From Octopus sinensis (lineage: Eukaryota), in assembly GCF_006345805.1 (NCBI RefSeq), contig NC_042998.1:113212001-113276000 (forward strand): a DNA stretch of 64,000 bases. The letters run 5' to 3'. The translations under genes and the position numbers were made by a program. This document shows positions 13,248-43,988 of this stretch, in pieces (the stretch's first letter is position 1; each line of letters opens with the position of its first letter). The notes beneath the pieces were generated by a model. The model saw only the letters and a program-made list of their open reading frames with translations. It did not search any database and was not told the DNA's origin.

Positions 13248-13393
13248 ATCTTACAAAAGTTTCTAGACAAACACAACGACAGCTATGAAGAGTATGTTTT
13301 CTCCCTGTGTATTTTCCTCTGCCACTATGCTGCCAGCTATGGAGAGCTGGCAGTTTATGATTCCAAAGAGAAAATTTGTCAGCAATTATTTAG
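13248..13393 (+). CDS. ZNF292-like: ZNF292-family exon 2 (N-terminal helical/TPR-like region)
   Basis: ttttcacag|...|gtaaat; 146 nt, phase 0 to 2; ILQKFLDKHNDSYEEYVFSLCIFLCHYAASYGELAVYDSKEKICQQLF; joins exon 3 in frame. Confidence 0.8.
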
Positions 13394-13591
13394 GTAAATA
13401 TTTTACATTTAAGTCTTCTTAATTCTTTTATTCTGTTTTGCTATTACCAGTGTAACATTGTTTCAACTGCAGTAACCACTGTTTAGTCATAAGTAAATTT
13501 AACTCAAAGATACTAAGGTATTATTTTGTCATTCTTGATAACATAAATTTTTCAAAGACCAGAATTTTTTAAGTAGTCTGACAACCAAGAA

Positions 13592-14135
13592 AGGAATAAG
13601 GGGTGTGCTGATCTCTAACTGTGGAGGGAACCTGTGATAGAGGTAGACCTAAGAAGACATGGGAAGAGGTGGTGAAGCATGATCTTCGAACTTTGGGCTT
13701 CATAGAGGCAATGACTGGTGACCAAGACCTTTGGTGATGTGCTGTGTTTGAGAAGACCCATCAAGTCAAGTGAAATTGTTGTCATGGCTGATGCTGGTGT
13801 CACATAACTGGCATATAAAAAGCACTTTTCGAGCATTGGGCCTCGCAGAGGCAAAGTGGTTGATGCCAGTGGCATGTGAAAAGCTCCTTTCAAGTGTTGG
13901 GCTTCACGAATGCAGTGACTGATACCATTGGCATTATCTTGTGCTTGAAAAGCCAAGTAAAATCACAGTCATGGCAGATACCGGTGTCACACAAATGATA
14001 CCTATGCCAGTGGCATGTAAAAGCACCCATTACATCCTCGGAGTGGTTGGTGTTAGGAAGGGCATCCAGCTGTAGAAACATTGCCAAATCAGACTGGAGT
14101 CTGGTGCAGCCTTCCATCTTGCCAACCCTGGTCAA
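13592..14135 (+). mobile_element. RTE-clade LINE 3' remnant with family B tail
   Basis: Decayed RT C-terminus (GRPKKTWEEVVKHDLRTLG..EAMT..DLW), then ggttggtgttaggaagggcatccagctgtag tail. Confidence 0.75.
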
Positions 14136-14772
14136 TGATGATATTGTGTATACCAAAATTTAATATCATGAGTGTTGGTGTACTTGCAATATTTGACTGG
14201 CATTTGTTTTTAGCAACACTAGAAAGATGAAAGGCAAAAATTAAATCCCATTAAGCATTTTATCTTCCACTCTACTGATTCTACTTTCTACCACTTTTTG
14301 AAAATGGTAGAATAAAATGTTCAGGATTGCTAATATTCAGTTCAAGCTTACACCAAGGTACAGAACAAAAGTGGGCAGTTTTGTTGAAAGTGTTTAGCAA
14401 AAACAACTCAAGTAAACATCTTTAGGCCAACAAATACAAATAAACTATTGAATGAGGTGAGCCTGAGCTTTCAGTTCATTTAGCTATATGCTAAACAGTG
14501 CAATGAAGCTTAGTAATATATTCTTTATTTCATCTGTGGCATTTGGCACAGTCAAACAGTGTTAGCAATCAACAGACATCATGGACTATTTAGAAGATTT
14601 CTTGAAAATAGTTAGATTCTGTTAAGCAGATTAATTAATTGTTGAATAGGGGACTGTGATATCCTGTGACCTGAATTTAAAACTGTAAAATGGGTGCATT
14701 TTAGCTGTCTGTCTGCACCTGTTTGTTGGTATTGGAATGAACAGTATATATAGAACTCAATACATGAGCTTC

Positions 14773-14838
<66 letters not shown>
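14773..14838. repeat. (GT)n(TA)n microsatellite
   Basis: Seen directly. Confidence 0.95.
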
Positions 14839-14842
<4 letters not shown>

Positions 14843-15036
14843 AATTGGCAAAAAGTTAGAAATGTAACTTGAAGACCAAGGGTTTTGTGCATGGTACTTT
14901 TCAAACTGGCCAGTTTGATAAGTGCCATGCACAAAATTCTTGGCCCTCTAGTCACTCTTGTAACCTTCTACTAGTTAAAATAGATGTGCACATACACACA
15001 TATGCACACAAGGCTGGTGATTCACTATCATTATTT

Positions 15037-15051
15037 ACACACACACACACA

Positions 15052-15120
<69 letters not shown>
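15037..15120. repeat. (CA)n(CT)n microsatellite
   Basis: Seen directly. Confidence 0.95.
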
Positions 15121-15123
<3 letters not shown>

Positions 15124-15868
15124 GACATGATGCATGAATCAGTAGTGTAATGTTTATGGTTGTGGAAATATGTTGTAAGAAGGTGTATTTATTATGTATG
15201 CATATAAGCCTAGCAGAGGTATCCTGGAAAAATGACTGCACTTATTTTGGATATGTCTGATGCAAGTATATGGTACAAGGGGAAGATAACTGCAATACTC
15301 AGGATGTTAGTTGTAAATGGATGGTGTAATAAAGTGTTGCAGCAAAACAGATCCCAATTAAAACTGCTAGGCCTTACAGAGGATAATAAGAGGTGATTGG
15401 AGATATACTGTTTCATATACCCACCTCAATTTGTTTATATTTCTTTGTAGATAGTAACAGAGCCAAGTAATAAAATTTGCACAATGTTCCAGATTTGCCC
15501 CTCACTGCTTTGGAAAGAGTTAGTTGTTTTGTGGAGGTTTTTCTTTCTTTTTTTTTTTTTTTTACCCTAATCTGAGGTCAACCCATATTTTGTGAATAAA
15601 ATTTGAAAGATAGGAAACTATAGAAACCCAGTAAATTGACTATACCTGTAATCAAATGGTCCAGCCTTGTTAAACAGTATCATGATGATTCTGCTTAAAC
15701 ATTAAGATGTAGAAGTGTCTGTAAAATATTCAGCCTCTTTAACACCCATCTCATTGAATAAGTTTCCAATTTAATCAAGAGAACTGCTGATTCACTGGAT
15801 TATAGTATAAGAGGCTGAATATTTCCAAACTGTATTCCTAAACTCATTTAGCTTCTCCTTTATTTCAG

Positions 15869-16089
15869 ACTATGTATTAAAGCAGTATTGGATGTCAAGT
15901 GGAGAGAATTATCTAATGAAAATACATGTCGGCAGAAGTTCCGAGAAACTGTGGATGCTGTCCACACACAACTGGAGCGGTTCAATTATGGTAAATTCCA
16001 GCTGATTAAGAAACTGATGGAGACCCACTGGGATCATCCAACTCTTAGCAGGATCATGGCTGGTGCTGATGATCTTGAAGAAAGTGAAG
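15869..16089 (+). CDS. ZNF292-like: ZNF292-family exon 3
   Basis: tttatttcag|...|gtaaat; 221 nt, phase 2 to 1; LCIKAVLDVKW...LERFNYGKFQLIKKLMETHWDHPTLSRIMAG resembles the family W-x-DPVLxxIL motif. Confidence 0.85.
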
Positions 16090-16550: not shown

Positions 16551-16753
16551 TAATGGAATACTTTGCTGAAGAAGACCCCATGGTGCTAAAAGTCCGAGTT
16601 GAGATGCTGTTAGATGAAAATTGTGAAGAATTTGCCATGAATCTTTGTAGATGGTGTTTTCTTCATCCTGAACTTGCTGACAATGTACAGTTGCGTGAGA
16701 CTCAACTTTTAATGCTTTACCGTTCTGCAAATGTAGAAAAACTACAAGAGGAT
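16551..16753 (+). CDS. ZNF292-like: ZNF292-family exon 4
   Basis: ttttccttag|...|gtaagc; 203 nt, phase 1 to 0; MEYFAEEDPMVLKVRVEMLLDENCEEFAMNLCRWCFLHPEL resembles ZNF654 KYLSSENPLFFELRARYL...CINHPEI. Confidence 0.9.
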
Positions 16754-17963: not shown

Positions 17964-18110
17964 TGTTCAAAGATCTCTTGTGAGATGGCAGTGCAAATCA
18001 TCAAGAATTTACAAGATTGTGAATCACATCAGGGATTTTGTGTGATGATAGCTCAAACATTTCTTGTGCAGAATTGGTTGAGAGGAGTATCTGCTGATAG
18101 TGGTACCAAG
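17964..18110 (+). CDS. ZNF292-like: ZNF292-family exon 5
   Basis: ttcttttcag|...|gtatgt; 147 nt, phase 0 to 0; CSKISCEMAVQIIKNLQDCESHQGFCVMIAQTFLVQNWLRG. Confidence 0.85.
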
Positions 18111-18475: not shown

Positions 18476-19319
18476 TCTGTGTTTGTGGCTGAGGAGGTAA
18501 ATAGAGAGATAACAATGGCAAAGGGTGAGTGAAAAAAAGGTGAGTAAGAGTATGGTGTTGGAAACAGATTGATTAGGACAGTAAAAGAAGTGACAGTGTA
18601 ATAGAGAGTAAAACGTATCTGGTCTGGGTTTGACTAGGGAGAAGAATTGTAAAGTTGTGGAGTTCTTTTCTTTTCCTGAAAGGAAGATTAAGTAAATTAA
18701 AATAGTTCAGCAGAGAATTGAAACCGTGTTGTGAGCTCATGGCACTAACCTCTTTTCAACATTGTTCATTGCTCCATCTTACAAACATCCATATATTACT
18801 TCCATTGTCTTATTTCTATGAAGGTTATACTGAAAGTAATACAGAAGTGAGCATGACTTTTTAACTGACGTAGATTGTTCAAATTAAACATGTTGGTCAT
18901 ACAAAGGAATTACTCAACATAGTCTCCACCACAATCAAATCATTTACACCATTGTTGAATCCAACCTTTGATTCCTCTTTGTAAAAATTCAGGTGTGGAT
19001 TCTTCACAGTCACTTTCACTTTATCTTTGTCATTACCTTGTCCATTAAGGCTGTCCTTTATTGGACCAAAAATTGTAAGATGGAGCAATGAACAATGTTG
19101 AAAAGAGGTTAGTGCCATGAGCTCACAACATGGTTTCAATTCTCTGTTGAACTATTTTAATTTACTTAATCTTCCTTTCAGGAAAGAAAAGAAAAGAAAC
19201 TCCACAACTTTTACTGTCCTAATCAATCTGTTTCCACCACCATACTCTTACTCACCTTTTTTTCACTCACCCTTTGCCATTGTTATCTCTTTATTTACCT
19301 CCTCAGCCACAAACACAGA
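18476..19319. repeat. Long inverted repeat (arms 18476-18784 and 19073-19319, 288-bp loop) in intron 5
   Basis: The right arm is the reverse complement of the left with 4 substitutions, a 5-nt indel and a 67-nt segment (18588-18654) present only in the left arm. Confidence 0.92.
18897..19139 (-). mobile_element. Tc1/mariner transposase C-terminal remnant
   Basis: LHLTIFGPIKDSLNGQ..DKVKVTVKN...FYKE resembles mariner SDYHLFGPLKxxLxG...EVKxAV...FYxxG. Confidence 0.55.
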
Positions 19320-19325
19320 AAAGTG

Positions 19326-20042
19326 ATGGTTGGATGCATTTTCTTGTGGCACCAACACTAGAGATGCTGAATAGTTGTTGATAAGACAGGACTCAAAGAC
19401 TTCACAATTCTACTGGAGGGCATCAGATCTGAGCTGTAACAGCGAACTAAATTCAATTTAGTTTACTAAGAAAATCAAAGAGAACGAACCTTTATCATCC
19501 TCCAAAATAACCATCATGACTTTCTTTGGCCAGTCACTGGCTCTTGAATTTCTTCGATCTTGGAGAAGTGTGACACTATTCCATGGATTGAGCTTCAGAC
19601 TAAAGAAGTGTTTCCAAATGCTTCCAGCTGACCAGAATAGACTTTTACCTTTCTCTCATTCAAATCTGGTGTCAACTGCTGAAGTACCCACTTAGCTCAC
19701 ATTTTCTGTTAACACAGTCTTACACCGACTTTTGCAATACATTGTGACTTGTCTGTCCATGCAAGTTAGTTCATCCACTCACTTTCATCCATGTCAGTGG
19801 ATCTCTATGCATTCATAAAATGCTCAACAACTTGATTTCTTACAAGCCAACAAAGGAACCTCTACCTAGTTACTTTACCTGCTAGAAATAACAATGAAAT
19901 TTTGCTCAGATCGCACCATCACAGACACTGCTCCCATACACTGGCTTGGTTTCTATGGTTGGATGCATTTTCTTGTGGCACCAACACTAGAGATGCTGAA
20001 TAGTTGTTGATAAGACAGGACTCAAGGACTTCACAATTCTAC
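19326..20042 (+). repeat. 88-bp direct repeat (19326-19413 and 19955-20042)
   Basis: atggttggatgcattttcttgtggcacc...cttcacaattctac occurs twice with one mismatch. Confidence 0.92.
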
Positions 20043-20292
20043 ACTTCCTCTGCTCATTTTTCAACCACTTTAGTAGGTACTGAGTGCATTTTTTGTGGAA
20101 CCAAAACTTGAGAGTTTGTCTTGCCTACCTTTAACTGTAGAGGAGGCACAATCAGAAAAGTGATAGTTTGCATCATGTCATTAGCACAGAAGGAAGAGTA
20201 CCTTCTGCACAGTGATTGTACAGAGTACTATTTTCAAAAAATATGGACTATTCATGTAGAAAAGCCTTTCAATATCAATAAGTTATGCTCAG

Positions 20293-20427
20293 TAAGGCTT
20301 TGTGATACGACTCCAATACTTGGTCGACGGTGATTTGGACAAGTTTTCTGACAGTGTTTGGGCCATTGCCAAACTATCACAACACACTGAACAAATAACA
20401 TTCCTTGTGGAGTCTCTACGAGAAGAG
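20293..20427 (+). CDS. ZNF292-like: ZNF292-family exon 6 (3' part and donor clear; 5' boundary uncertain)
   Basis: IRLQYLVDGDLDKFSDSVWAIAKLSQHTEQITFLVESLREE|gtattt resembles SKLQ...VFVDQCYQLL...IFPFMKIIKDE|; phase 0 into the next exon; in-frame TAA at 20293-20295. Confidence 0.7.
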
Positions 20428-21236: not shown

Positions 21237-22001
21237 GCTGGAGATACATTTCTGCAATTGAACACCAATTTATGTATCTATGCTTTCAATTTGGACAAAG
21301 GTTGTTTAGAACAAGCTGTTGCAGATAAAGATATGGAGTTGATTCTTTGCCGAAATGTAGCACTTTCCAAAACCAGCCAAATGATCATGAATCTTTATGA
21401 TGGTCTCAGTCAAAAACTTGCTAAACTGTCAGGACTCACAGCTTTTGCTCTTGATCCTAGTGAAGAAAATTTTGAGATTGTCTACTCAATATTCCATTCT
21501 AATAATAATAACTCTAATTCATCTTCGTTGGGTGGCAGTAGCAGCCATCACAATGATATTGATGGTAGCAGCCCTAATAAGTATGTCAACAAACTTACTA
21601 ACATGCTTGATGGCTTGCATGTAAGTCCAACGAAAGAGGTGAAAAAATCCAAAGAGAAACAACGGACACAACGCAACCGGCACTCTATGTCCCATCGTAC
21701 TGTTGACAATGTGGAATACTGCAATTTGTCTGTGAATCCAGCCAATCTATATGAAATAGAACGACTGCTCAATAATATATGTCCGTTTCACCTGGATATA
21801 GAAATGTCATTTAGTGATTTGCATGCCATGTGTATGGAACATCTGACACAACATCAAGAAATGTTAATGGTTCTTCATGAAGAAAGCACTGATGAATGTA
21901 GTGAATTTTCTAACTTTGATGAAGAGCAGCCCCTCTCTGAAGCAGCAGTTCAGAATAATGAAATGGCTGCCTTTACTGAAAATGTTCTCAAGAAAATGTA
22001 A
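21237..22001 (+). CDS. ZNF292-like: ZNF292-family exon 7, first part (ends at a premature stop inside the duplication)
   Basis: ttattctgtattccag| acceptor; AGDTFLQLNTNLCIYAFNLD...LAKLSGLTAFALDPSEENFEIVYSIF resembles family ICVEICGCALQLD...RICALSIFFLERSLEAYRTVEELY. Confidence 0.85.
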   Translation, partial: AGDTFLQLNTNLCIYAFNLDKGCLEQAVADKDMELILCRNVALSKTSQMIMNLYDGLSQKLAKLSGLTAFALDPSEENFEIVYSIFHSNNNNSNSSSLGGSSSHHNDIDGSSPNKYVNKLTNMLDGLHVSPTKEVKKSKEKQRTQRNRHSMSHRTVDNVEYCNLSVNPANLYEIERLLNNICPFHLDIEMSFSDLHAMCMEHLTQHQEMLMVLHEESTDECSEFSNFDEEQPLSEAAVQNNEMAAFTENVLKKM

Positions 22002-22215
22002 ACTCTAATGTAATTTTTTCATAACCTCCTTCACAACCACATACAGCAAACAGCTTCAGTAACAACATGAAGAGCAGCCCCTCTCTGAAGCAGCAGTTCA
22101 GAATAATGAAATGGCTGCCTTTACTGAACAATGTTCTCAAGAAAATGTAAACTCTAATGTAATTTTTTCATCACCTCCTTCACAACCACATACAGCAACA
22201 GCTTCAGTAACAACA
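21919..22215 (+). repeat. 148-bp tandem duplication inside coding sequence
   Basis: atgaagagcagcccctctctgaagcagcag... starts at 21919 and 22067; copy 1 has a 1-nt deletion, a 1-nt insertion and a substitution. Confidence 0.95.
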
Positions 22216-25200
22216 GCAGCTTCAGCAACAACAGCCGCTACAGTAACATCTCAAGAAAATTGCACTGAACCAGAGGAGGGTTCAGTAGGAGGGCATCAAG
22301 TTGGAACAAAACCAGAAGCTAAGTGTGCTTGCGGCCTTCCCAAAAGCTGCCAGGTAACTGAAGAGGTTTGTAATTGCAAACAAAATCTCCCTAAAAATAG
22401 CTGTCATTTGAATCAAACGTATCCAAATAGTATCTCTAATAGAAACCTCTTTGAGGCTTTTAACAAAGATTTGTCGACACAGCCCTATAGCATTCAGTCA
22501 AGGGATCATCGGCATTCAATGTCAGAGGCCTCCAAGATTCAAAATGCTTGTGAAAGAGACATTAAAAACCAACAGGTGAGTCACTGCAGTGGTAATGGCT
22601 TCCCTAATTGTGGTGCATCAACTTTAGGCACATGCAGTTGTGATAGATCTGGCAGTGTTCATACATGCCTCTCTTTTGAGAGCCAGATTGATTTTTCCAA
22701 CATTGGTGACAATTCATCTTCTTCTTCTTCACTGATGCAAACACAACATGCTTCTGATAAGCTCCATAAAGCTCGAACGAAGGATAGTCATTGCTATTGT
22801 AACAAATCATTACCTTCCATTTCTGATGGTAATGTAAATGTTACTGCACCCTGCAAGTGCGTATGTAAAACTAAAACTAAGTCAGGGAAAAAATCAGACA
22901 AGTCTGCAAAATGTGATAAAAACCTTCAACAAACATCTGAAATCAAAGATGGCAAAGATACTCCATCAAAAAGTTTATATGTTTCTAGTGGTATTAATGA
23001 GGATCAAGTAAGTTCAGAAATTCCTACTAGTGATCGATTACTTGAAAAACTTCAGTCTTGCATATCATCACTTACTGGAAATAATGCAGGTTGCTCTACT
23101 GAAAAGTTTTTCCTTTCTAAAATAGAAAAATCTTACATTGACCGTTATTGTCAGTTTCTGAAATCTGTTAGCCAATTTGAAATGGCTTTACTCACACAAC
23201 AGAACAGTAAACCAAGTTCAAGGCGAAGAAAGAATTATGTTGTGGTGTATCGCTGTGGAATTTGTTGTGACTTTTTTGACCAGGTTTCTGAACTGAAAAA
23301 TCATATTCAATCTATTTGTAAAGCTTCTGTGTCAGATCTGCAGAATCTAACTGAAGCAGCTACAATATTCTGTGCAAAAGATTCTGCTCTCAGCAAAATT
23401 AAATTCTTTAAATGCCTTAAGTGTTTGCAATACACATGCACTCGTAAGGAAATGGATGACCATTTGAGACTGTGTGGCGTACCCCTAGTAAAGAAAACTT
23501 CCAAATCAACTAATACCTCTTCCTTGGCAGAGAAAAGCCAAATACAGAAAAAACCCTCATTGACTTTAGAGGATCCCAAAACAAAAGCACCTGAAAAAGA
23601 AGTGCCTAAAAAGCAGCAAGAAGTGGTTCCTTCTGTTCCTGGAACTGAAACAATCAATGTCTCAAAGCCATCCATTTGCCCTACTGAGGAGCGTTCAATG
23701 AAGACTCCAGTCAGCAAAGAAGGCTCTTCAAGTGATGTGACAACATCTCCAGTTATAAACGCCACCATGGAGACAACCACAACGAACACTGTCTTCAAAT
23801 GTAAAGAGGAACAACTGGAGGTTGATCCTGAAAACAAAGAGGATAAAAAACCCAAAGTTAAACAAACAAGTGAAGAATATTTCAAATGTCAGATCTGCAG
23901 TCGTCTGCTGCTTGGCCCACATCGACTTAGACTTCACCAGGAAGCTTGTAAGAAAAGGAATGACATCAGAAGACGTATTAAAAAAGCAAATATAGTGAAA
24001 CCTTTAGTCAATATAAAAACAGAAGTTGTGACACCTGATTCACAAGCGACAGAAGGGTCTACATCTCATCCACAAAATAATCTTACTACAGTGAATACAA
24101 CCAAAGTGAACCAGACAACTGTTACAGGTACCAGCAAAGTAGAAGACGCACCTTCTGCTACAGCAAACTTGCCCCAGCCTGAAAAACCTAAACATTGTCC
24201 TGATTGTGAACGTATCATCAAGTTACGTAAAGTCTCCCAACAATTGAGCTTATCAGATGCTCAAATAAAAATTGAACCAACTGAAATCACTGACAAAAAT
24301 AACTCCCGTTCAGTTTGCAGTGAAGAAGAAATTCCTAATCAACCAAATAGTTCTGTGCAGAATTCCTCAATGGTCCACCAGGAAGTAGAAAGTAAAGCTG
24401 TGAAAACAGATCAACCAGCAACTTGCTCTAATAGATCCAACATGAACAATGATGAATGTATTAAGAGAACAATGCTTCAAATTAAGTCAGAAATGGAAAA
24501 TCAGTTCTTACCAAGGAAACCAGTCAAACCAGATAAACCTTTGCAAGATTCTCCCCCTGTTGTTAATAAAGTCATTGAAACCATCGAGACAAAGAGTGTT
24601 GTGAGTGAAGATGAATTGCTACTTGTTGGTGATGGCACAATGACGATGTCCCCAAGTAGAAAGATGCGTATTTTATCACCATATTGCCGAAAATGTGATT
24701 TCCATTTTCGCAACCGTTCAAATTTTGTAAAGCACCTTGCCATTACTCATCTCCAACCATACACTAAGGAAACTGTCTCTGAATTGAGCAAGCCTATAGT
24801 GATATTTACTTGTGTATATTGTCAGATTGCTTTTCGAGTTTGGTTTAAATATATCAATCACATTCCCAACCATGCGACTCACATTCTTAAAGAGCTGAAC
24901 TGCCGGTGGGTTAAGGAAACATGTCAAGAAGAGAAAACTGCAGTTGTTAGTGGCAAGGGAGCCCAAAAAAAGACACAGTTAAAACTTGTATGGCCACCAC
25001 CAGAGGAAGAAATTGGGTCCTTTCTTAAAAGAAAACGAAGAAAACCATCCAAAAGAAAGTTTAATCGAAACGCAAGCCTAAGTAATATTTCTCAAAGCAC
25101 TATATCAAATTTCATGTCAGCCAGCTGTGATGTTGATAATAAAACTAAACAAGATATTCTGCATGTTATGCACAATCTTCTGCAAAGTATTGTTGGCATG

Positions 25201-30495: not shown

Positions 30496-33400
30496 ATGCA
30501 TCACAGCCTGCACCAGAGATGCTTATTCATTCTACCACAAAACAATCAGTGAAGATGCCAAATATATCCAGTATTACACCTGAACTTAAGAAAATATGCC
30601 GGCTGTCTGTGGATAACAACTCTTTGTCACCATCTCAGTGTTCAGCACTGGCAGTAACAACCCAGTCAGCATTATCAGTTAACAAGACAGCCACTCTGCC
30701 ACAAGCTTCAGCCATCAATCCACCAGATCCGTCCACTGCAACATTTGACAAGACCTCTGTGTTGCCAACATCACAAAATCTTGAAATGCAGTTGTCTCCT
30801 GCTTCAGACAAACCGACGAGAGATTTATTTGCTCTAAACAATATACAGGTTCCAAATTATTTGTCATTACCTGCCTTAACATCATCACCTCCAACTTCTG
30901 CATTAAATATACAATCGTCTTCCATTTCAAAACTTCAACCAAGGTTCTGTCCTAGTTCAGAAGCTTCTGTTTTAATGTCTTCATCTAAATCTGATGTATC
31001 ATCGTCATCTTTAACTTCTTCTGTTGCTGACACTTCTGAAGTAGCTAACACATTGCTACCTCAGTCAGTCACTCCAAACCAAACCTATTCTTCTAAGCAA
31101 TCTGTTGTCTCTAAAGCTATTTCTCCAGTACCATCTACTCATTTAACTCCATCCTCTTCTCACTCTGTTCCTTTTAGTTCTGACACACAAACTTCACTAC
31201 CCAGTACATTAGGCTCTAGTACCCTACAAACTACTCCTCACTCTCTACATAGTCCACAGTTTTGCACTGCTACTTCAAGCAAAAACACTTTCCCTCATCT
31301 AAATGTATCACTTTCACCAATAAAACTCCAAACTCCCATTTCTTCAGTAGATCCCAAGATTTTGGTCCCTTGCTTATCTACAAATATTATTACTCCAACT
31401 CTTAGTTTGCCTCCATATACTGAAACATCAACCAATATCTCATCATCAGACCCAAAGGTTTCAGTATCAAGTTTATCTCCAAATACTAAACTTGTTTCTT
31501 CTACTCCAATTCCACTTGGTCCAGACTCATCAAAAAGTACCCCACTACTAGTTTCTAATTCATCATCAGACATAATGTCTGAAGTACCTAGTGTCAGGGT
31601 TATTCCATCTGCCACTAAAAATCCAGAACTTAGCTCATCACCTAATGCTAAGGTTCCAGTATCCAACTCCTCAACATTCACTTCCTCTTCTGCTACTGAT
31701 ACTTCAACTTTTACCTCTTCCTCTACTATGATCCCATCATCTATAGTGGCCAGCTCCTCATCTACTACCAATGCTCTAATACCAAGTTCATTACATATTA
31801 ATGATAATAGGGCATCTGACATCCTCCCTGTTATCAAGACTTCAGTTTCCAGTTCTTTGTCTTCTACTGAAACTGCAGTTGCCAACACTTCTATTTCTGG
31901 TTCCTTGCCTGCCACTGACACTCCAAAATCCTGTTCATCATCTGAAACCTCATCTTCTAGTTCATTTGATAAGCAAAATTTTAATGCTCAGAATAACTCC
32001 CTAGGACTCAAAAACACACCTCAGTCTGCTAGTTTATCTCATTCTCTCACTCCTGCAAAGATATTACCTGTTGTTTCTGAAAACAATTTGAGGGTTTCTT
32101 GTTCAGTTACTCCCAGTATCTCAACTAATTGTTCTCCTCTTCTTAAGAACTCAACTAATAATTCTGCTGCCAGTTCTCTGTCAGTTATCAATAATCACTT
32201 GGCCGATTCTTCTGGTACATCATCCCTTGTTCCCACTGTTTTGGCTAGTCCTGTTTCTGCATCAACTTCTAACACCAAAGCATCCAGTGATAGTTTTGTA
32301 CAGCCCCCAACTCCTAGTTCTTCTGATCTCAACATTTCCACATCTATTTCTTCAAGTTCCAATGTCAACATTATGAGTAAGTCACCTCCAACTTCCAATC
32401 CTACTGTGACTGAAAAGACTCCAGTTACCATCTCTGTTACAACTGAAAGAGATCCCCAGCCTATCTCTACTTCTCCTGCTCCTTTGAAGATATCTACTCC
32501 TACTCCCAGCTCCACTTCTACACTGAACTCCTCTGATCTACAAACTACAAAAAGAAGTACATCTGATACCAAGACATTAGTTACTGACTTGTCTTCATCT
32601 TCATGTACACCCAATATATCTGAATCATTGCCGTTAACCTCTGGTATTACTGCTTCTAGTTCATTGTCAACATCTAAGACTTCAATTCCCAGTTCATCTG
32701 ATCCACAACTTTTGTCAGCTGGACTAAAAACTATTAGTTCAAGTGCTGATACAAAGCCACTAGCACTTAATGATCCTAATTCTATGAGATCAAGTGGTAG
32801 TTTCACAACCTCATCGGACAGCAAATCTCTTAGCACCAAAACCTCAGCTCCCGACTTGACTGATAGTCCTAAAATCTTGGCTTCCAGCTCTATCAGTAGC
32901 CCCAAGACCTTGGTGCCCATTTCTTCTGATGGTCCCAAGATGTTGGCTTCTAGCTCTTCTGATAACTGTAAGACCTTAGCACCCACCTCCACTGATACCT
33001 CTATCACAACAGCTTCCAGCTCTACTCTTAATCCTAGAACTTCAACTGATAGTCCAAAAACATCAGCTCTCAGAATTTCTGATTCTCCACATATATCAGT
33101 CCCCAGCTCTGACAGTTTGAAAGCACTAGATGGCAGCTTAACAGATATTTCTCGGGATTTAGTTGCTAGCTCCTCAGGTAGCCTCGAAACATCAGCTTTC
33201 AGCTCAGCAACAGATAATTCTAAGATGCTACCTACCAGTTTAACTACTAATACCACTTCTACTTTACCTAAAGCACTTGATTCAGTTTCTTCTGTCACCA
33301 AACTTTCTAGTACAGTTTCATCCTCCACTCCCAACTCAGTAAAATCTACCATTCTCAAAACAGTGCCACCTAACAGCACATCTATTAAAACAAAATCTCT

Positions 33401-36400
33401 TGATACCTCTGGACCTCAGAAACCAATAACTTCCAGTGACTCATTCTCCATCACAACACCAGTCATATCAGTTTCTGTGACACCAACACCCAGCTCTACA
33501 TATCCCCCTAAGCCTACATATTCTCCTTGCACATCATCTACTACTTCTACAGCTAACCCTCAAACTCTGGATCTCAGCTGTACATCTGTTCCCTCTAACT
33601 CTACATCTTCCCCCAAGGCACCAGCTTCTCACTCTACATTTGTCTCCAAAGCTCCAGCACCTAGTTCTACATCTTCCCCTAATATACCAGTCTCCAGCTC
33701 TACATCTGTCCCCAAAACTCAATCACTCACCTCAACAGCTGTCTCTAAAACACCAGCCCCTATTTCTACCATTTCCTCCAAAACTCCAGCACCTAGTTCT
33801 ACTACTACCCCCAGGACACCTGACTCTGGTTCTGCAACTTCCCTCAACACACCCATCCCTAAAACTCCAACACTCAGTTCTACACCTATCTCCAAAACAA
33901 CAACACTCACTCCTACAACCACCTCCAATTCATCAGCTCCTAACTCTGTTTCTTCCTACAAAACTCCAGCACCCAGTGTTAAAGCAACCTCTACAGCACC
34001 GACCCCCAACTCTGCATCTCTCCCAAAAATTACAGCACCTAGTACTACTGCTTCTCCCAGCTCTATATCTCTCTCAAAAATTTCAGCAACCATTACTACA
34101 GTTACCCCAAACTCTTCACCTGTTCTCAAAACTCCAGTACCCTGTTCTACAGCTACTCCCAAGATGCCAGTTCCTAGTTCTACATCTGTTCCTAAAATCC
34201 AAACAAGCACCTCTACAGTTGCCTCCAAGACACCAGCCCCCACCACATCTTCCTCTAATGCAGCAGCACCCACTGTGACAACTGTCCCTAAAACATCAAC
34301 AACTACAAAAATATCTACAGTCAAAACTCAAGTGTCTTTCTCCAAGACACCAGCCTCCACTACTGTAGACTCCCCAAAGACACCAGCCTCCACCACTACA
34401 GATGCCACAAAGACACCAGCCTCCACCACAACAGAAGCCCAAAAGACTCCAGCCCCCACCACAACAAATGTCTCAAAAACACAAGCCTCCACCATAACAG
34501 ATGTCCCAAAAACACCAGTCTCCACCACTATAGATGCTGCAAAGACCCCAGCCTCCATCACAACAAATGTCCTAAAGACACCAGCCTCTACTACAGATGT
34601 CCCAAAGACACCAGCCTCCACCACCATAGATGTCCAAAAAACACCAGCTTCCACTACTACAAATGCCTCAAAGACACCAGTCTCTACCACAACAGACATC
34701 CCAAGAATGCTAACACCCACAACTTCATCTGCTCTCAAAACAACAGTGCTCACCTCTACATCTTCCTCCAAGTCTTTAACTCTTAACTCTACATCTAACG
34801 CTTCAGAAACTACCACTACAACTCTTCCTATAATTCCATTGCCCAGTTCAAGCTCTCAACACAGTACTCCAACATCAGTTTCTATTTGTATTCAAAAGAA
34901 TTTGGCATCTAGCTCTACATCTTCCCCACAGGTCCCTTCACATAGCACTAATTCTACCCACAAGACTTCACCAGCCAGTATTGTTTCTACAACAAAGACC
35001 TTGGCTGCCAATACTGCATCTTCACTCAAGACCAAACCAACAGCGCCCACTTCTACAACTACCCCCAAGACACCCCCTTCTACAACTATTCCCAAAACAT
35101 CAACACCCCTTTCTCCTGCTACATCCAAGACATCAGGATCTATCTCTACTACTACCCCCAAGACACCAGCACCCACTTCTACATCTACCCCCAAAACATT
35201 AGCATTTACCTCTACAACTACCCCCAAAACACCAGCAACCACTTCTACATCTACCCCCATGCCATCAGCATCCATTTCCACAGCTGCGCCTAAGACACCA
35301 GCACCCACTTCTACAACTAATCCTAAGACACCAGCAACTACTTCTACTATTACCCACAAAACACCAGTAATCACTTCTACATCTTCCCCTAACACATCAG
35401 CATCCATTTCTACAGCTGCACCCAAGACAGCAGTCCCAAGCATTACAGCTGTCTCTAAGACACCGGCAATCAGCTCTACAATTGCTTCTAAGATACCAGC
35501 ACCTAGCCCTGCATCTGCCTCTAAAACACCAGTGCTCACCTCTACAATTATTCCTAAGTCACAAGTCCCTGCCTCTGAATCACCAGCACCCAACTCAACC
35601 TCTTCCCCCAATACACCAGCACCCACCTCTACTTCTGCTCCAAAGACACCAGCACCCACCTCTACAACTACTCCCAAAACACAGGCCTTCAGTTCTGTAT
35701 CTTCCCCTAAGAGCCTGGCTCCCAGCTCTACCTCTGTCCCCAAGACTCAAGCACCAACTTCTACAACTGCCCCCAAGACACAAACACCAAGCTCTTCTTC
35801 AACCTTACAAACATCATCACCCAACTCATCTTCATCTCCTACAACACCAACACCCATTTCTACAATACCAGCACCCACTTCTACAACTACCCACAATGCA
35901 TCATCACCAACTTCTACATGTACCCCCCACCTTCCATCACCAAACTCACCACCTACCCCTAGCTCTTCAACTCTCAAAACCTCAATACCCAGCTCTTCTT
36001 CAGCCCCCAAGACACCAGCATTCAGTTCTACAGATACCCCCAAAATACTAGCATCCAACTCTACAGCTAAATCCATATCACCAACCACTACAGCTGTTTC
36101 TAGGGCCCCAGCTCTCAGCTCAACATCTGCTCCCAAGACACCAGAACCCACCTCTTCAGCTATCACCAAGGCACCATCCCCCAGTTCCACCTCTACCAAG
36201 ACACCAGCCCCCAGTTCCACCTCTACCAAGACACCAGCCCCCAGTTCCACCTCTTCCAAGGCACCAGCCCCTAGTTGCACCTCTTCCAAGGCACCAGCTC
36301 CCAGTTCCACCTCTACCAAAGCACCAGCCCCCAGTTCCACCTCTACCAAGGCACCATACCCCAGTTCCACCTCTACCAAGACGCCAACCCCCAGTTCCAC

Positions 36401-39400
36401 ATCTAGCAGGGCACCCACCCCCAGTTCCACATCAAGCAAAACACCTACCCCCAGTTCCACATCTAACAAAACACCCACTCCCAGTTCCACATCTGCCAAG
36501 ACACCAGTCCCCAGTTCTACATCTACCAAGATGCCAGCCCCTAGTTCCACATCTACCATCAAGACACCAGCACTCAGATCTACAGCTACTCCCAAGACAC
36601 CAACTCCCAGTTCTACAGCAACTTCCAAGGCACCAACTCCCAGTTCTACAACTACTCCCAAGGCACCAGCCCCCAGTTCTGCCACTTCTCTCAAGACACC
36701 AGCCCCTAGTTCTACCACTACTCCCAAGGCACCCACCCCTAGTTCTACAACTACTCCCAAGGCACCAGCCCCCAGTTCTACAACTGCTCCCAAGGCACCA
36801 ACCCCCAGTTCTTCAACTACTCCCAAGGCACCAACTCCCAGTTCTACAACTGCTCCCAAGGCACCTGCCCCCAGTTCTACAACTGCTCCCAAGGCACCTG
36901 CCCCCAGTTCTACAACTACTCCCAAGGCACCAGCCCCCAGTTCTACAACTGCTCCCAAAGCACCAGCACCCAGTTCTACAGCTACTCCCAAGGCACCAGC
37001 CCCCAGTTCTACATCTAGCACCAAAACACCAGCCCCCAATTCTGCAACTACCAAGACATCAGCCCCCAGTTCCACATCTAACATGAAAATATCAGCCCCA
37101 AATTCTACATCTACTCCCAAGGCACCAACACCCAGTTCTATTACAACTACTACTACCACTATTTCTACCAAAACACCAACTCCCAGTTCAACATCTTCCC
37201 CCAAAACACCAACACCCAGTTCTGCAACCACTCCCAAAGTTCCAGCACGTAGTTCTACTACTACTACTTCTAGCAAAACACCAACCCCCAGTTCTACATC
37301 TAGTACAAAAACATCAGTAAGTATTACAACAACCCCCAAGACACCACCACCCACTTCTACAGCAACATCCAAGATAGCTACAGTCACCTCTACAACAACT
37401 TCTAAAGCTTTATCACTTAGTTGTACCTCTTCTCCTGCAGTACCCAGTTCTACTTCAACCTCCAACACACTTATATCCAAATCTGCCCTCAAATCTACTG
37501 TGGTCCTTTCCAATACTACATCCAAATCTCTGGCACCCAGCTCTGCTTCTCCTTCCTCTACCACTATTACTGTTGCATCCAAGACAACAGTGCCTACTTC
37601 TACCACTGCATCTAAGCCAACAGTTTCTACTTCTACCACAACTCCTAAGACTACAGTTCCCACTTCTACCACTACTTCTAAGATCACAACTCCTATTTCT
37701 ACCACCACTACTACTAAAACTACAACTCCTACCACTACTTCTAAGACTACAGCTTCTACCTCTATCACTACTTCTACCATTGCTTCTCCTTCCTCTACTA
37801 TTGCATCGAAAACAACAGTGCCTACTTCTAACACTATTACTAAGACTATAGCTCCTACCTCTACCACTACTTCTAAGGCTATAGCTCCTATTTCTACTAT
37901 TGCTTCCAAGACTACAGCTACTACCACCACTGCTAAGACAACACCTCCTACTTCTACCATCACTGCCAAGACAACAGCTCTTACTTCTACCACTGCTTCT
38001 AAGACAACACCTACTACTTCTATCGCTGCTTCTAAGACAACAGCTCCTACTTCTACCACTACTTCTAAGACAACACCTCCTACTTCTACCACTGCTTCTA
38101 AGACAACACCTCCTACTTCTACCACTGCTTCTAAGACAACACCTCCTACTTCTACCACTGCTTCTAAGACAACACCCCCGACTTCTACCTCTGCTTCTAA
38201 GACAACACCCCCTACTTCTAGCACTGCTTCTAAGACAACAACTCGTACTTCTACCATTGTTTCTAAGACACCAGCCCCTACTTCTACCACTGCTTCTAAG
38301 ACAACTTCTAAGACAACAGCTCCTACTTCTACCGCTGCTTCTAAGACAACACCTACTTCTACCACTGCTTCTAAGACAACACCTACTTCTACCACTACTT
38401 CTAAGACAACAGCCCCTATTTCTAACACTGCATCTAGAACAACACCCCCTACTTCTACTTCTACCACTGCTTCTAAGACAACAGCTCCTACTTCTAACAC
38501 TGCATCTAAAACAACACCCCCTACTTCTACTTCTAAGACTACAGCTTCTTCCTCTAGCACTGCAGCCAAGACTACCACTGCTCCTAATTGTAGTACTGTA
38601 CCAAAGACCTCAACATCCAGTTCTACCATTATCACTAAGACTTCAACACCTTCCTCTATCTCTAATCTTAAATCTCCAATGCCTAAAGTTGTTTTAACTG
38701 GTTCCAAATCAGCAATGCCTAGCATCATTTCTGATCCCAAAACAGCAGTTTCCAGTTCTAAATTTGATGTGAAAAGTTCAATGTTGAGCTCTACATCTGG
38801 CAGTGAAGCAGCAACACTGAGCAGCATAAGCAGTGACAAGACACTTGAGCCTAGTGTGACATCTGGTATCAAAAGAAAAGCTCCCAGCTCCATTTCTAAT
38901 GTCAAGAGACCAGCACTTAGCTCTTCTAGTGTTGAAAAGAAACCTGCGTCTAGCTCTACTTCTAAGATAGCTTCCAATTTTATCAAAGATTCTGAGACAT
39001 CTCTCAAATCAGCTCCTGAGGTTACCCTAATTTCTGGTTCAAAATCTTCACCAGTTACCCCTACCTCTAGTCTGAATACTCTAGCTACCAATTCTACTAA
39101 TGGCATTAAAATTCTACCTCGTAGTTCTGCTACTGGTGCTCCAGCTTCTAGTTCTGCTATTGATGCCCCAGCTTCCAGTTCTGCTACAGCTAGTGACACC
39201 CCAGTTTCTAGTTCTGCTACTGGTTTTGACACTCCTTCTCTTAGTTCTACAGTCAGTGTTGATACTACAGATGCAAATTCTACTTTGAGAAATAGCTTCC
39301 CACCTGGTGAAAAAAGTTCTCGTGTCTCTTCTCTGAACAAAAGTTCATCTTCATGTAATTCTGGGCCAAGTTCCTCTTCAATTCCCCCATCGGTTTCTGT

Positions 39401-41217
39401 TAGCATTTTTGATACCAAAATGCCTCACTCTTCTGATTCATTAACTCCCATAACAAGCTCCTCCTCTAGTATCAACACCACACTTTCATCAGTAGATATA
39501 ATATCATCACCAAACTCTGTCTCTACAGAACTTGCATCATCCACCAGTTCAAAAATGTCTGCTGTTGTTGTCTCCTGTCAGAATACTTCATCCTCCTCTT
39601 CAAATGTAAATTCTGAAATCTCTGACCCTAAATCTCCCTCTTCTACATTCTCTTCTAACTCCATATCCCCAACTCCTATTTCATCGTCTGTTCAGTCATC
39701 TTCAGAATTAGCTTCCTCATCAAATCAAGTTGTAATTGAGTCTGATTCACCTTCTCAATCTAAATCAGGTAATCACTCCTCCAAATGCACATCTAGCTTA
39801 CCTTCCATTAAGTCCCCAAGTAGGATGTCTCCTGTAGAAAGTAAGTCATTAACTTCATCTGCTCCTTCCTCTAGTGTTTCAACATCATCAGATTCTGTTA
39901 CTTCATCTCATTGTGCCAAAGATTTAGTTCTTTCGTCTGAAGTTAAATCAGCCCCATCACCAAATAACCTAACTTTAATGTCATCAACTTCTGTCACTAC
40001 CAACGAACCAACCCCATCCTCTGTTCTTTCCAAAGAGTTTGTTCCATCTTCATCTGTTTCATCCGAGACAGCCCCATCTTCATCTGCTTATTCTAAGAAG
40101 CCAAAAGCCACTCCAGTAGCAAGCTCTAAGACATCAGTTTCATCTTCTACTAAAAGAATACTACCATCATCTTCTAATAATATAACACAAACTCCCAGTT
40201 GTAGTCCTGTTGAGTCTTCAGACTCACTCCACTCTGCTAGTAAACCATCAAGGTCTTTGTCATCATCATTTGACGCCAAATCCCCTGTGCTTTCTTCTTT
40301 GTCTAGTGTCAAGTTGCCTGAGCCTTCATCATCATCATCATCATCATCTGGTGCTAAACCACCAGGTCCATCATCATCATCATCATCTGACACTGATTTG
40401 CTAGGACTCTCATCATCATCTGACAGCAAGCTTCCAACACTGTCATCATCTAATGACATTGTACCAACAACAGTATCCCAATCAATTGAATGTAAACTTG
40501 ATTCACCATCAGTGACACCGATATCTTCTACTTTCCCTCCATCTCCAATGCCTTGTTCATCTACAAATCACAGATCTCCTCCACACAGTCAAAAATTGCC
40601 ATCTCCTTCATCATCAACTGACTTTTCAGATTCTAATGTAATTACCCCATCATCTAATAAATCTGATTTGCCAATTGTGGCATCATCAGCTTCTTCTGAA
40701 TCAGTGCCCCTATCAGCATCAATTGATGAAGACTTGATGATGTCTTCAGAACTGTCATCTAATTTAGTTGAATCAACTAGTAATCAGAACACTTCTTCAC
40801 ATCCTTTTGAACCCATTCACACTACATCTTCCTCTTCTTTAACAGAAGATGCCCATTTACATTCTTCATCTACTGCATCATGTTCTTCTCTAGAACTTCC
40901 TGAGCAGTCATCAGCAACTCCTATTTCATCATCTGTGCAAGACCCTATCAAGGTGCCTGTGTCAGCCTCCTCCTCTTCCTCATCATCATCGCCATCATGT
41001 ATGGAACCATTATCTTCGGAAGTATCCAACTCTCAGTCATCAGCCCCAGTTTCCTGTATCAAAGAGTCACAAAAATTAATTAACAGTGCTGCTGACTCTC
41101 TGTCTCCTACTTTAAACACTGCTTCTCCTTCCAACATGGTACAACAGACATCTGTTGCTTCAACTCCTTGCCTGTCTAGCAAATTGCCTTTTAAGTTAAT
41201 ATCTTCTTCATCAGCTG

Positions 41218-41252
<35 letters not shown>

Positions 41253-43988
41253 GAAACATCAGATTTAGTCATTTCTGTAAACAGTAGTTCTAACATTCCA
41301 GTTTCACACAAAGTTTGCAACTCTCCTAATGTGGATACAGGCCTTAAACCCTCCCTTTGTGAAGATGAACAAAATGCTTTGGAAAGTTTAGTGAACAGTA
41401 AAACTGAAAGTGATTTGACTAAGGAAATGACAGAAAATTTAGAACCTGAAAACACCAGTACTAGTCAGAAATCAGAAGAGGATGCACAACCACCTGGTAC
41501 ATCTGTTGATATTGATCCAAATAAATATTTGGAACAAATATCAGAAAATTCTGTTGAGGAGAAACCTAGTGAAAATAATACTGAAATCAAAACAACTTCT
41601 GTGAGTTCTGATACTCTTGGAGCTGAACAATTGATTTCCAAGACCAAAAGTGATGTGAATGAAGGCCAACCAGTTAGTTGCAGTGATGTTGCTAGCCAGC
41701 CATCAGATTTTAAATGTGAGTTGGCTAATTCTTCTGACACTGAAGTTAGCAGGTTATTATGTGATGGTAAAAAACCTGTTGGTGATGTGACAGGTGCTCC
41801 TCAGAAGTCTTGTGACATTAAATGCGACTTGTCTGTAACAGATGACATTAAAACTAATGAGAATTTCAATTCACAGACTCTGATTGCAGACACTGATCAA
41901 TCAGTAATGGAATCTGATATAAAAGAGGATAAAAATTTGGAAAGTGGAGAGAAAGAACGTGCCTCATCAGAGTCTCAAACTGAAATAAAAACTGAAAAAT
42001 CTACTTCTATTAAGACTTACAGTTCATCTAAGGTTGATATTAAGACAGATTCAAAAGTGAAGTGCGAGGTAGAGGAGAAAAGTGAGGTTGGAATTTCCTA
42101 CAATAGTCAGTCCAAATCAACTATTAAGGATGACAGTTCTGACATTTGCAAGAATGAGAAACAAGAGCAAGTAACCTGTGAGGAAGATGACTTGCAAAGT
42201 TTTAATAAAAGCAGTAAATGTGAAGAGCTAGCATTACAACTGCAGGAAAATAGTTGCCATTCAGAAGAATCGACAGACTCTGGCAGTCGAAGGCTACGTG
42301 GAAGACCCCGAAAGACCAGTGCAGAGACTGTCTCTGCTGAGCAAATGAAAACCCAACTATTGAACCCTGGAAATATTATAAACTTACGCCTTCGCCGAGA
42401 CCGTCCATCCTTAAAGAATGGGAAATGTAAATACTGTTGCTGCAAAAAACGCTGTCAGGCCAGCTGTGTTCAGAACAAGTGTATGGGTTGTATTTTAGAT
42501 GGCAATTCAATATGTCGTTGTAGTTTAAAAGAAAGCTTGATGAAAAATATTCAAAGTATAGCTTTGTCTGTTAATACAATGTGCATGAATTGTCATGGAA
42601 AGAACAAAAGATCTGTTCGGGCTTGCAAGCGGAAACGCTCACCAAGTCCACAACCAAACAAACGACGTGGTGTTCTGCAAAGTCAAGTAAAACCCTCCAC
42701 TACAACAAATCAAAAATCATCCAAAAATTCCTCAAAAGTATCTAGAACAAACTTTAAAACCAAACTGACTACAACTCCTCACAAAACAATTGCCAAATCA
42801 CCCCACAAAAAATCCCTAACAAAAACCCCTTCTAAAAAAGTAATTGAAGTTGAATTGAAAAAAATCTCTCGAGAACCTTCTAAGCAAAAAGAACCCAGAT
42901 GTAAATTAAAGAAAAAGCTCAGTGTCAATCTTTTGAAAGAAAACCCTGTTGTCTCTCTGAAGCAAATGAGCTCATTAGAGTCTCTGTCAGCTAGCCAGAC
43001 AAGTAAAAAGGAGGATAGCACAAAGCATGTATCAACAAGGCGTTCACTGAGGAGTAGAAAGTCTCTTGATGAAAGTACACCAGTATTGCAACAGATGCGC
43101 CGATCAAAGTCGGAACAAAAGCTTGATTCGAATAATGACAGTGCATCAAAATACCAAATTGATTTGGCTCTTACAGACAATATGAATGATACAAAGATCA
43201 GTTCTAAACTTTCACAAGACCATCTCAGGACAAATAGCAAAAGCAATGCAGCTCAGCCATGCTGCAGTACAGCAGATGATTGTTGTAGTACATGTGCTGA
43301 CAACTTTAATAAAAAATTTGTAGATAATCGTGCTCTAAAAGAACTGCGGCAGCGTGTTAAACTTGGACCTTTTAAATGGGACTTGGAAGAATCAGATACT
43401 GGTGGACGAGCTCACACGAATGACGAATCTAATAAATCTAATAATGCAAATACTGTGTCAACTTGCAACACCAGTGTATCTAATACAAGCAGTAGTAGTA
43501 GCTCTTCTAAGGTATCAGAAAATACCTTACAAGTATCCCAGTTAACTCCCTCCTCTTCTGCATCATCATCAAGTAGTATGGATGATGAACTTGTGAAAAC
43601 ATCCATGACCCCACCAATCAGGACTTACTCTAGAACCCAGTCCCCAACTTCTCGGATCCGTGTTGGCCGAACATACAGTAAAGCATCTGACTATCAGGCC
43701 CTCCCCCCTGGGGTAATACCCATTGTAGACTGTCTGCGAGCATCATCACGCAGTTCAGCCAGTCACCTGTGTGACATGCCCCGTGTACATGTAGTACGAG
43801 TAGATAAAAAGGGCAACATGTTTGAAACTCGAGAACCTTACCCTCTGCCCAGAACACCTGTGGACACTGACATAAGTCGTAGTGTACTTGATGAGGAAAA
43901 AGTTTCTGGCCAAAGGTGGAAACTGCAAAGAACTAAAATGAAAACAGATGGCTATCCATTTAGTTTTAAGAAAACACGAATTCAATAA
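30496..43988 (+). CDS. ZNF292-like: ZNF292-family terminal exon 8: 13,493-nt coding exon, Ser/Thr/Pro-rich mucin-like tail, AT-hook, Cys cluster
   Basis: ctctacttccag|AT acceptor completes G|AT (Asp) with the phase-1 donor at 25888; uninterrupted frame to TAA 43986-43988 (ORF track 30411-43988). Confidence 0.85.
33400..38600 (+). repeat. Coding minisatellite arrays with 30-nt and 33-nt units
   Basis: About 13 x 30-nt (TKTPAPSSTS) at ~36165-36555; 33-nt TTPKAPAPSST at ~36580-37020; 33-nt TASKTTPPTST at ~37900-38540; TTDxPKTPAST at ~34350-34700. Confidence 0.9.

Follow-up and report, generated by a model that had tools for sequence, protein, structure and literature searches.

A probable mollusc-form Rlf/ZNF292/ZNF654 gene of Octopus sinensis with a giant Ser/Thr/Pro-rich region between its finger and AT-hook motifs

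Two very long open reading frames (ORFs) lie on the plus strand of a 64,000-nucleotide stretch of the Octopus sinensis genome (NCBI RefSeq assembly GCF_006345805.1, contig NC_042998.1, positions 113,212,001 to 113,276,000, forward strand; hereafter, the window). One of them, at 22111-26103 (1,330 codons), contains zinc-finger motifs, and the other, at 30411-43988 (4,525 codons), resembles a mucin in composition. Does this locus contain one gene or two, and what does the downstream ORF encode? An earlier reading of the letters alone (the original prediction) proposed that a single protein of the Rlf/ZNF292/ZNF654 family is encoded from 13248 to 43988. Our sequence comparisons indicate that this region is probably one gene, a mollusc-form orthologue of that family. 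The answer matters for annotation, as an ORF-based caller would split the locus into a zinc-finger gene and a 'mucin', and could call a 1,223-codon antisense ORF in addition.

Family identity and gene structure

We searched the spliced model against Pfam and detected PF25580 (TPR_Rlf, 'Zinc finger protein Rlf-like, TPR repeats') on residues 192-374 with an E-value of 1.3e-9 (38.2 bits; curated cut-off, 27). The Haliotis orthologue also matched PF25580. An exhaustive HMMER search, with the N-terminal exons and the non-repetitive C-terminal part as the query, matched 122 proteins, including Elysia 'zinc finger protein 292, partial' (3.2e-85), Protopterus ZNF292 (3.3e-10), Polypterus ZNF292b (4.6e-10), and Latimeria Rlf (2.7e-8). 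The named vertebrate matches were ZNF292 in lungfish, bichir, and ray, and Rlf in coelacanth and platypus; an annelid match carried the UniRef title 'Rlf/292/654 TPR repeats domain-containing'. Mollusc matches of 3,215-4,834 residues came from Potamilus, Tegillarca, Ylistrum, Haliotis, Elysia, Biomphalaria, and Bulinus. The top named matches were bivalve and gastropod proteins with 32-44% identity, which fits a mollusc affinity. The original prediction had assigned the protein to this family and suggested a search of the N-terminal exons against the family domain. The TPR_Rlf match above the cut-off and the direct matches to named ZNF292 and Rlf proteins agree with that assignment. Mouse Rlf binds DNA via a subset of its fingers and maintains the hypomethylation of CpG-island shores and enhancers (PMC4381397, PMC4053835). 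Our literature search found no paper linking ZNF292 or Rlf to cephalopods or molluscs.

The exon chain was rebuilt by hand (Table 1). Exon 2 encodes the start of the conserved N-terminal helical domain. It was 88% identical to the exon in L003, a 426-kb ENA contig that encodes the related protein P0002, and equal in size to exon 2 of the Haliotis asinina gene (L004). The codon numbers of exons 2 to 5 in the window and in Haliotis were 49 and 49, 74 and 76, 68 and 69, and 49 and 49, respectively. Junctions 2/3, 3/4, 4/5, and 6/7 were clean and in phase. A close-relative fragment (P0020) read through the same donor as exon 3, and the exon 5 end at GTK was common to the fragments of three relatives, including P0027 and P0037. 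The finger exon and the terminal coding exon are joined by strong splice sites, namely, the donor AAAAG/GTAAGA at 25888/25889 and the acceptor ...cttccag/AT at 30495/30496 with 86% pyrimidines upstream. This join is in phase, as G + AT yields Asp. The model spliced from exon 2 comprises 6,276 residues, or about 6,300 with a first exon, which matches the predicted length. The predicted start of exon 2 at 13248 and the 13,493-nt terminal coding exon were recovered exactly. The predicted in-phase chain held at junctions 2/3, 3/4, 4/5, 6/7, and 25888/30496 but failed at the exon 5/6 join and at a 148-bp duplication, both of which are described below.

Comparative evidence that the finger exon and the giant ORF belong together was strong, and the two appear to be parts of one gene. 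P0002 is encoded by one uninterrupted genomic ORF of 10,218 nt and is 69% identical to the window protein in conserved parts, closer than any named mollusc sequence. Its ORF starts at the equivalent of 21237, contains five fingers, a Ser/Thr-rich stretch, the AT-hook, and the Cys cluster, and shares its ending, ..GYPFSFKKTRIQ, with the window ORF; in L003, exons 2-6 are found in the 6 kb upstream of it. In the Haliotis asinina gene, six small exons precede a single terminal exon that codes for residues 320-3215. The five-finger layout recurs in the bivalve and gastropod proteins that have the N-terminal domain, as do the C-terminal sequences ..PF[TK]WD(L/V).. and KW..(F/Y)P(Y/F)SF(T/K)(R/K); an RGRPRK AT-hook is often present as well. 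In addition, a 14.8-kb Logan contig, presumably a transcript, contained a full ORF of 4,834 residues (P0016) that runs from the N-terminal domain to the same C-terminus.

A single-sequence phmmer search with the last 240 residues against mollusc orthologues detected only two close relatives, and motif profiles were used instead. The profiles of the two C-terminal motifs were built from non-cephalopod mollusc orthologues alone. Each gave a single match in the 6,276-residue model, at its expected position and above all 500 shuffled decoys (Table 1). The C-terminal motif QRWKLQRTKMKTDGYPFSFKKTR was identical in P0002, and P0003 differed from it at three conservative positions (..QRSKMKTDAYPFSFKKAR). 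P0002, Haliotis, the motifs, the profiles, and P0016 therefore place the end of an Rlf-like protein at the end of the window ORF. The proposal that the giant ORF is spliced onto a nuclear regulator is thus consistent with the comparative evidence, and the sites at 25888/30496 appear suited to it. A likeness to the vertebrate C-terminal LKQLxxMRPxVVL motif was seen by eye, and its homology was rejected by hhalign (probability 0.1%, E 0.46).

The intron at 25889-30495 has no counterpart at the same position in L003 or in Haliotis L004. This pattern suggests that an intron was gained in this lineage within an exon that used to be continuous. In the ancestral state, one giant terminal exon would have encoded the end of the TPR domain and everything after it, and the gained intron would here have split that exon. 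Inside the intron are inverted repeats (26919-26958/28516-28555 and 27372-27460/29018-29106) and, at 27592-28165, short transposon-like ORFs with no Pfam match. No terminal inverted repeats or target-site duplications were found at its ends, only the internal inverted repeats.

We identified five finger motifs in the finger exon using a regular-expression (regex) scan. They are widely spaced over 1.6 kb of coding sequence (23254..24873). Three of the five follow a C2HC pattern (C-x2-C-x12-H-x3-5-C), and only two are canonical C2H2 motifs; the five zinc fingers predicted upstream of the terminal exon are accordingly present as motifs of two types. Pfam zf-C2H2 reported no finger at an E-value of 0.1 or below. 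The five-motif layout was also found in 10 mollusc orthologues and in P0002. Of the nine relatives P0002, P0004, P0007, P0008, P0010, P0012, P0015, P0016, and P0017, all of which have these motifs, six have RGRP[RK] after the fingers. The ratio of nonsynonymous to synonymous substitution rates (dN/dS) of the finger exon was 0.25 relative to the close relative L001.

The known mollusc orthologues include Biomphalaria glabrata XP_055883589 (4,637 aa), Potamilus streckersoni KAK3605793 (4,156 aa), Haliotis asinina XP_067685185 (3,215 aa), and Elysia marginata GFS14076 ('zinc finger protein 292, partial'). Like the window protein, the mollusc orthologues contain the TPR_Rlf domain (32-44% identity), five fingers in the same order, an AT-hook in several cases, and a long disordered finger-free C-terminal part with PF[TK]WD and the KW..(F/Y)P(Y/F)SF end, encoded by small exons and a giant terminal exon. 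Unlike the window protein, they have at most 192 residues in Ser/Thr/Pro-rich windows (3,560 here), lack the KTPAPTSTTTP array described below, and have no Cys cluster beside the AT-hook; the Haliotis terminal exon is intronless. Bivalve and gastropod orthologues have 777-2,799 finger-free residues after the last finger; the value of 777 comes from a possibly truncated model, and the others are at least 1,114. All sampled bivalve and gastropod orthologues are 3,215-4,834 aa long with five fingers; therefore, a long finger-free tail is the ordinary mollusc state. The original prediction contrasted the protein with vertebrate members, but five fingers with a long finger-free tail are no cephalopod novelty, because this arrangement is common to the sampled orthologues. 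When orthologue lengths were compared, as had been suggested, great length proved common in molluscs, but Ser/Thr/Pro richness did not.

Vertebrate ZNF292, RLF, and ZNF654 are nuclear proteins, as the window protein is expected to be, and resemble it in their widely spaced fingers, their giant last exon, and a homologous TPR_Rlf domain (22-25% identity, E 1e-8 to 1e-10). They differ in having 13-16 C2H2 fingers that extend to approximately 300 residues from the C-terminus and in being 1,900-3,900 aa long; the original prediction had described them as much shorter and as having many C2H2 fingers. The mollusc form of the family is thus a giant five-finger protein, in contrast to the vertebrate form with 13-16 fingers.

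The Ser/Thr/Pro-rich linker and the C-terminal module

We compared the 4,525-codon ORF with shuffled sequences. Shuffling inside 300-nt blocks, which retained the local C-rich and G-poor composition, gave longest open frames with a mean of 180 and a maximum of 304 codons (n = 200). The other two plus-strand frames contained 3-71 stops per 1.5 kb. All other frames had stops in each 1.5-kb bin, save one reverse frame (0-1 per bin at approximately 35-39.5 kb), which is nearly stop-free because of the composition. Antisense shadow ORFs were observed on the minus strand opposite the array at 35747-39418 (1,223 codons), 32195-33379, and 34892-35743.

The ORF at 30411-43988 encodes 44% Ser + Thr + Pro overall and no finger motif. 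In its core, Ser + Thr + Pro account for 55-70% of the residues, with one Lys per approximately 11 residues. The unit KTPAPTSTTTP was found in the terminal exon only; 82 units are spaced exactly 11 residues apart, and 38 more differ in length but stay in frame (multiples of three). The repeat units were 26% diverged from the consensus, and second codon positions were the most conserved. No in-frame stop was present in the 82 exact-length units, compared with 10-13 expected, and none of 2,000 neutral simulation runs was stop-free. The absence of stops, the in-frame variants, the ORF length, and the dN/dS of 0.25 therefore indicate that the region is coding and is kept open by selection. Since the conserved C-terminal modules follow the array in frame, translation must pass through it.

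We measured Ser/Thr/Pro richness as the number of residues in 100-residue windows with at least 45% Ser + Thr + Pro. The window protein had 3,706 such residues, of which 3,560 were continuous; P0002 had 990, other molluscs 0-192, and vertebrates 0-269. At a threshold of at least 55%, the window protein alone among the mollusc orthologues and P0002 retained any residues (3,109; longest run, 1,892), and a ray ZNF292-like protein had one 140-residue stretch. By these sequence comparisons, the Ser/Thr/Pro richness is lineage-specific, and the extreme expansion is confined to this lineage.

The distance from the last finger to the AT-hook was approximately 80-260 residues in other molluscs, 1,700 in P0002, and 4,300 in the window protein. 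The expansion is therefore in an internal linker between the finger and AT-hook/C-terminal modules, not in a free tail. The original prediction had described a Ser/Thr/Pro-rich tail; the composition and the absence of fingers stood, and the position had to be revised to a linker that precedes the AT-hook and the C-terminal module.

The final 1,000 or so residues of the ORF are more ordinary, with an acidic stretch, an AT-hook, a Cys cluster, and basic tracts. The AT-hook and the NLS-like (nuclear localization signal-like) basic tracts of the finger-free end are present as predicted. A second Cys-rich cluster, PCCSTADDCCSTC, was found at 43257-43295. The Cys positions of both clusters are conserved in P0002 and were not seen in bivalve or gastropod orthologues. 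The segment containing the AT-hook and the Cys cluster matched no Pfam family and no PDB sequence, and its AlphaFold model had a predicted local distance difference test (pLDDT) score of 40 and was thus not used for a fold search. The Cys clusters may form a zinc-binding module beside the AT-hook.

In the proposed arrangement, the protein would consist, from the N-terminus to the C-terminus, of the TPR_Rlf domain encoded by small exons, five fingers, a long disordered region, the AT-hook, and two short C-terminal motifs. The disordered linker would have swollen to approximately 3,560 Ser/Thr/Pro-rich residues, partly via expansion of the 33-nt minisatellite. The array may have grown by slippage or unequal exchange of the 33-nt unit. 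Growth keeps the frame because the unit length is a multiple of three, and expansion would be tolerated because the array lies in a disordered linker. A minisatellite in a giant exon can thus insert thousands of residues between conserved modules with the gene unbroken.

By analogy with mouse Rlf, and from the fingers, the AT-hook, the NLS-like tracts, and the lack of a secretion signal, the protein is expected to be nuclear and chromatin- or DNA-associated. Golgi-type glycosylation with O-linked N-acetylgalactosamine (O-GalNAc) would be unexpected for such a protein. The contour length of the linker is approximately 1 micron (3,560 residues at approximately 0.35 nm each). We speculate that the linker is a modifiable, weakly cationic tether. 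It contains many Thr-Pro and Ser-Pro sites, at which proline-directed phosphorylation or modification with O-linked N-acetylglucosamine (O-GlcNAc) would be plausible, again speculatively. The S/TPKK motifs of histone H1, the KSP repeats of neurofilament-H, and the PST repeats of MDC1 share with the array (S/T)-P-K units, net positive charge, disorder, and species-variable repeat number. They have no sequence homology to the array, whose unit contains a single Lys in 11 residues and no KK pair like that of the H1 motif. A stronger proposal is that the array is a selected, lineage-specific, polycationic tether, phosphorylatable or O-GlcNAc-modifiable, which connects the five fingers to the AT-hook/Cys-cluster/C-terminal module. 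We regard this as unlikely. If true, the tether would alter the distance, or the type of condensate, in which the two DNA-binding ends act. If the linker is modified or length-polymorphic, the locus would be a natural experiment in how spacer length affects a chromatin regulator.

Frame disruptions and alternative readings

Two features of the assembled 5' half disrupt the frame. At the start of exon 6, an insertion of approximately 16 nt and a TAA at 20293-20295 distinguish the window from L003 and all orthologues, and the ancestral acceptor context is gone. Exon 6 of every orthologue opens with ELL(K/R)LWIR.. in phase 0, and the conserved ELLKLWIR is unreadable in the window. An in-phase join of exons 5 and 6 therefore needs a weak, non-conserved donor (18102/GTACCA) and an acceptor at 20296. 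Skipping of exon 6 would preserve the frame, since this exon sits between two phase-0 boundaries. The other disruption is the 148-bp tandem duplication in the finger exon, in which the nucleotide missing from the first copy causes a frameshift and a stop at 21999-22001. The close relative L001 has a single copy of this segment and a continuous ORF. A canonical intron excising the duplication exactly was rejected, as no good GT-AG pair exists; the best candidate (GCA/GTTCAG ... TTCAG/AAT, 21948-22101) is weak and costs two residues. Both resemble defects at the level of the assembly or the allele more than true gene structure, and the duplication is probably an assembly or gap-closing artefact or an allele-specific lesion.

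Several points weigh against the reading as one intact gene of the Rlf family. As a result of these two disruptions, reading the full 6,300-aa ORF from the assembly requires a weak splice site plus an ad hoc intron. A search with tblastn using orthologue N-termini and a regex scan gave no credible exon 1 or start codon. The model was read from genomic DNA, and all its junctions are predicted ones. A junction-spanning protein search gave no match because low-complexity words filled the candidate list. P0002 and the window protein are too diverged around 25888/30496 for a convincing alignment. Furthermore, the open frame through the repeats shows the need for the downstream modules, not a function of the repeats. 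With the finger exon and the C-terminus as queries, word-index searches retrieved P0001 and P0003 alone; P0001 runs past the 25888 donor into the intron, and it is therefore genomic and gives no junction evidence. Continuity across 25888/30496 depends on the conserved blocks at both flanks.

The disruptions could alternatively be real, and the assembly would then contain a defective copy of the same gene (a null allele or a pseudogene). Neither lesion occurs in the relatives (the segment is single in L001, and the exon 6 start is intact in L003 and the orthologues), and no strong splice pair removes either of them. On the other hand, the ORFs of 1,330 and 4,525 codons are intact, the dN/dS of the finger exon is low, and the 26%-diverged repeats contain no stops; skipping of exon 6 would save the frame, and assemblies often contain spurious small tandem duplications and short indels. 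We consider a defective copy quite unlikely. The gene could also be single and its mature protein far shorter, with the array spliced out or the 25889 intron retained. With the intron retained, the finger-exon ORF runs 72 codons beyond the donor to a stop at 26103, giving a hypothetical isoform of approximately 1,850 aa without the tail, and the opening part of this read-through is conserved in a close relative. Long repetitive exons often contain cryptic splice sites, and the splicing of the gene model is predicted from genomic DNA. However, the frame over the array has stayed open where 10-13 stops would be expected in 82 units, which would be unneeded if the array were spliced out, and the fingers and C-terminal motifs are encoded in one exon in the relative and in other molluscs. 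A far shorter mature protein thus seems very unlikely.

The mucin-like appearance of the 13.5-kb ORF raises the question of whether it is a separate secreted mucin-like gene downstream of a zinc-finger gene. Like mucin genes, it has kilobases of degenerate Thr/Ser/Pro tandem repeats in one huge exon, with second codon positions most conserved. Unlike mucins, the window protein as modelled from exon 2 has no signal peptide, transmembrane segment, or vWD, C8, TIL, CK, or SEA domain, and its repeat region is embedded in a nuclear zinc-finger protein. No Pfam family was detected in the opening 1,000 residues of the giant ORF or in its final 995, no hydrophobic 19-mer exceeded 1.37 on the Kyte-Doolittle scale, and the head of the ORF has no plausible initiator followed by a signal-like peptide. 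The orthologues start with MDFS.., which is not a signal peptide. Moreover, the last 450 residues are the AT-hook/C-terminal module of the family, which is contiguous with the fingers in relatives. A separate mucin is scarcely credible, and the original statement that the protein is not a mucin agrees with the nuclear-type motifs and the absence of mucin domains. A single mollusc-form gene of the Rlf family, with local defects in the assembled 5' half, remains the probable reading.

Feature positions and other features of the window

The positions of the features of the candidate gene are summarized in Table 1.

Table 1 Features of the candidate Rlf-family gene in the window.
Feature	Position	Strand	Remarks
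Exon 2	13248-13393	+	49 codons, ILQKFLDKH...QQLF; acceptor AG 13246-13247, donor GT 13394
Exon 3	15869-16089	+	Phase 2 in, phase 1 out; 80% identical to L003 exon
Exon 4	16551-16753	+	
Exon 5	17964-18110	+	Conserved strong donor after ..ADSGTK (GTATGT), phase 0 left
Exon 6	20283-20427	+	5' end disrupted; open frame from 20296; clean donor after ..LREE at 20427
Finger exon	21237-25888	+	End of TPR_Rlf domain, five finger motifs, NLS-like tract
148-bp tandem duplication, first copy	21920-22067	+	1 nt shorter; second copy 22068-22216
Finger motif 1	23254-23319	+	C2HC, regex scan
Finger motif 2	23413-23475	+	C2HC, regex scan
Finger motif 3	23887-23949	+	C2HC, regex scan
Finger motif 4	24685-24750	+	Canonical C2H2, regex scan
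Finger motif 5	24811-24873	+	Canonical C2H2, regex scan
NLS-like tract	25027-25059	+	KRKRRKPSKRK
Intron	25889-30495	+	4.6 kb, lineage-specific, splits putative ancestral giant exon
Terminal coding exon	30496-43988	+	13,493 nt, 4,497 codons including stop; TAA at 43986-43988
Ser + Thr + Pro >=45% region	30720-41405	+	3,560 continuous residues; core almost without Asp and Glu
33-nt tandem repeat array	33594-38542	+	Degenerate, approximately 5 kb (Tandem Repeats Finder); 11-residue unit, consensus KTPAPTSTTTP
AT-hook	42288-42317	+	RRLRGRPRKT; RGRPRK after fingers also in P0002 and several mollusc orthologues
Cys-rich cluster and basic tract	42426-42671	+	CKYCCCKKRCQASCVQNKCMGCILDGNSICRC ... CMNCHGKNKR (42426-42626), then basic tract KRKRSPSPQPNKRRG
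Conserved motif	43326-43400	+	NRALKELRQRVKLGPFKWDLEESDT; profile match 13.1 bits, E 2.9e-6; best of 500 decoys 9.7
Conserved C-terminal motif	43902-43979	+	..QRWKLQRTKMKTDGYPFSFKKTR; ends three codons before stop; 11.3 bits, E 1.6e-5; best decoy 6.3

Repeated fragments were observed in intron 5. Copies of the ORF-like segment MKPCCELMALTSFQHCSLLHLT lie at 18718-18864 and 18897-19139, on both strands, and the segment GWMHFLVAPTLEMLNSC occurs twice, at 19274-19381 and 19894-20010. These look like interspersed repeats or copies resembling miniature inverted-repeat transposable elements (MITEs). Rfam and tRNA scans of the window found no RNA genes. Long dinucleotide microsatellites, (TA)n, (CA)n, and (GA)n, are located at 14737-15130 in intron 2 and at 48559-48863 downstream of the gene. 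On the minus strand, a 101-codon ORF at 58027-58332 showed a match to Pfam DNA_repr_REX1B-like below the cut-off (E 3e-4, 21.7 bits; cut-off, 24) and probably represents an exon of an adjacent gene encoded on the opposite strand.

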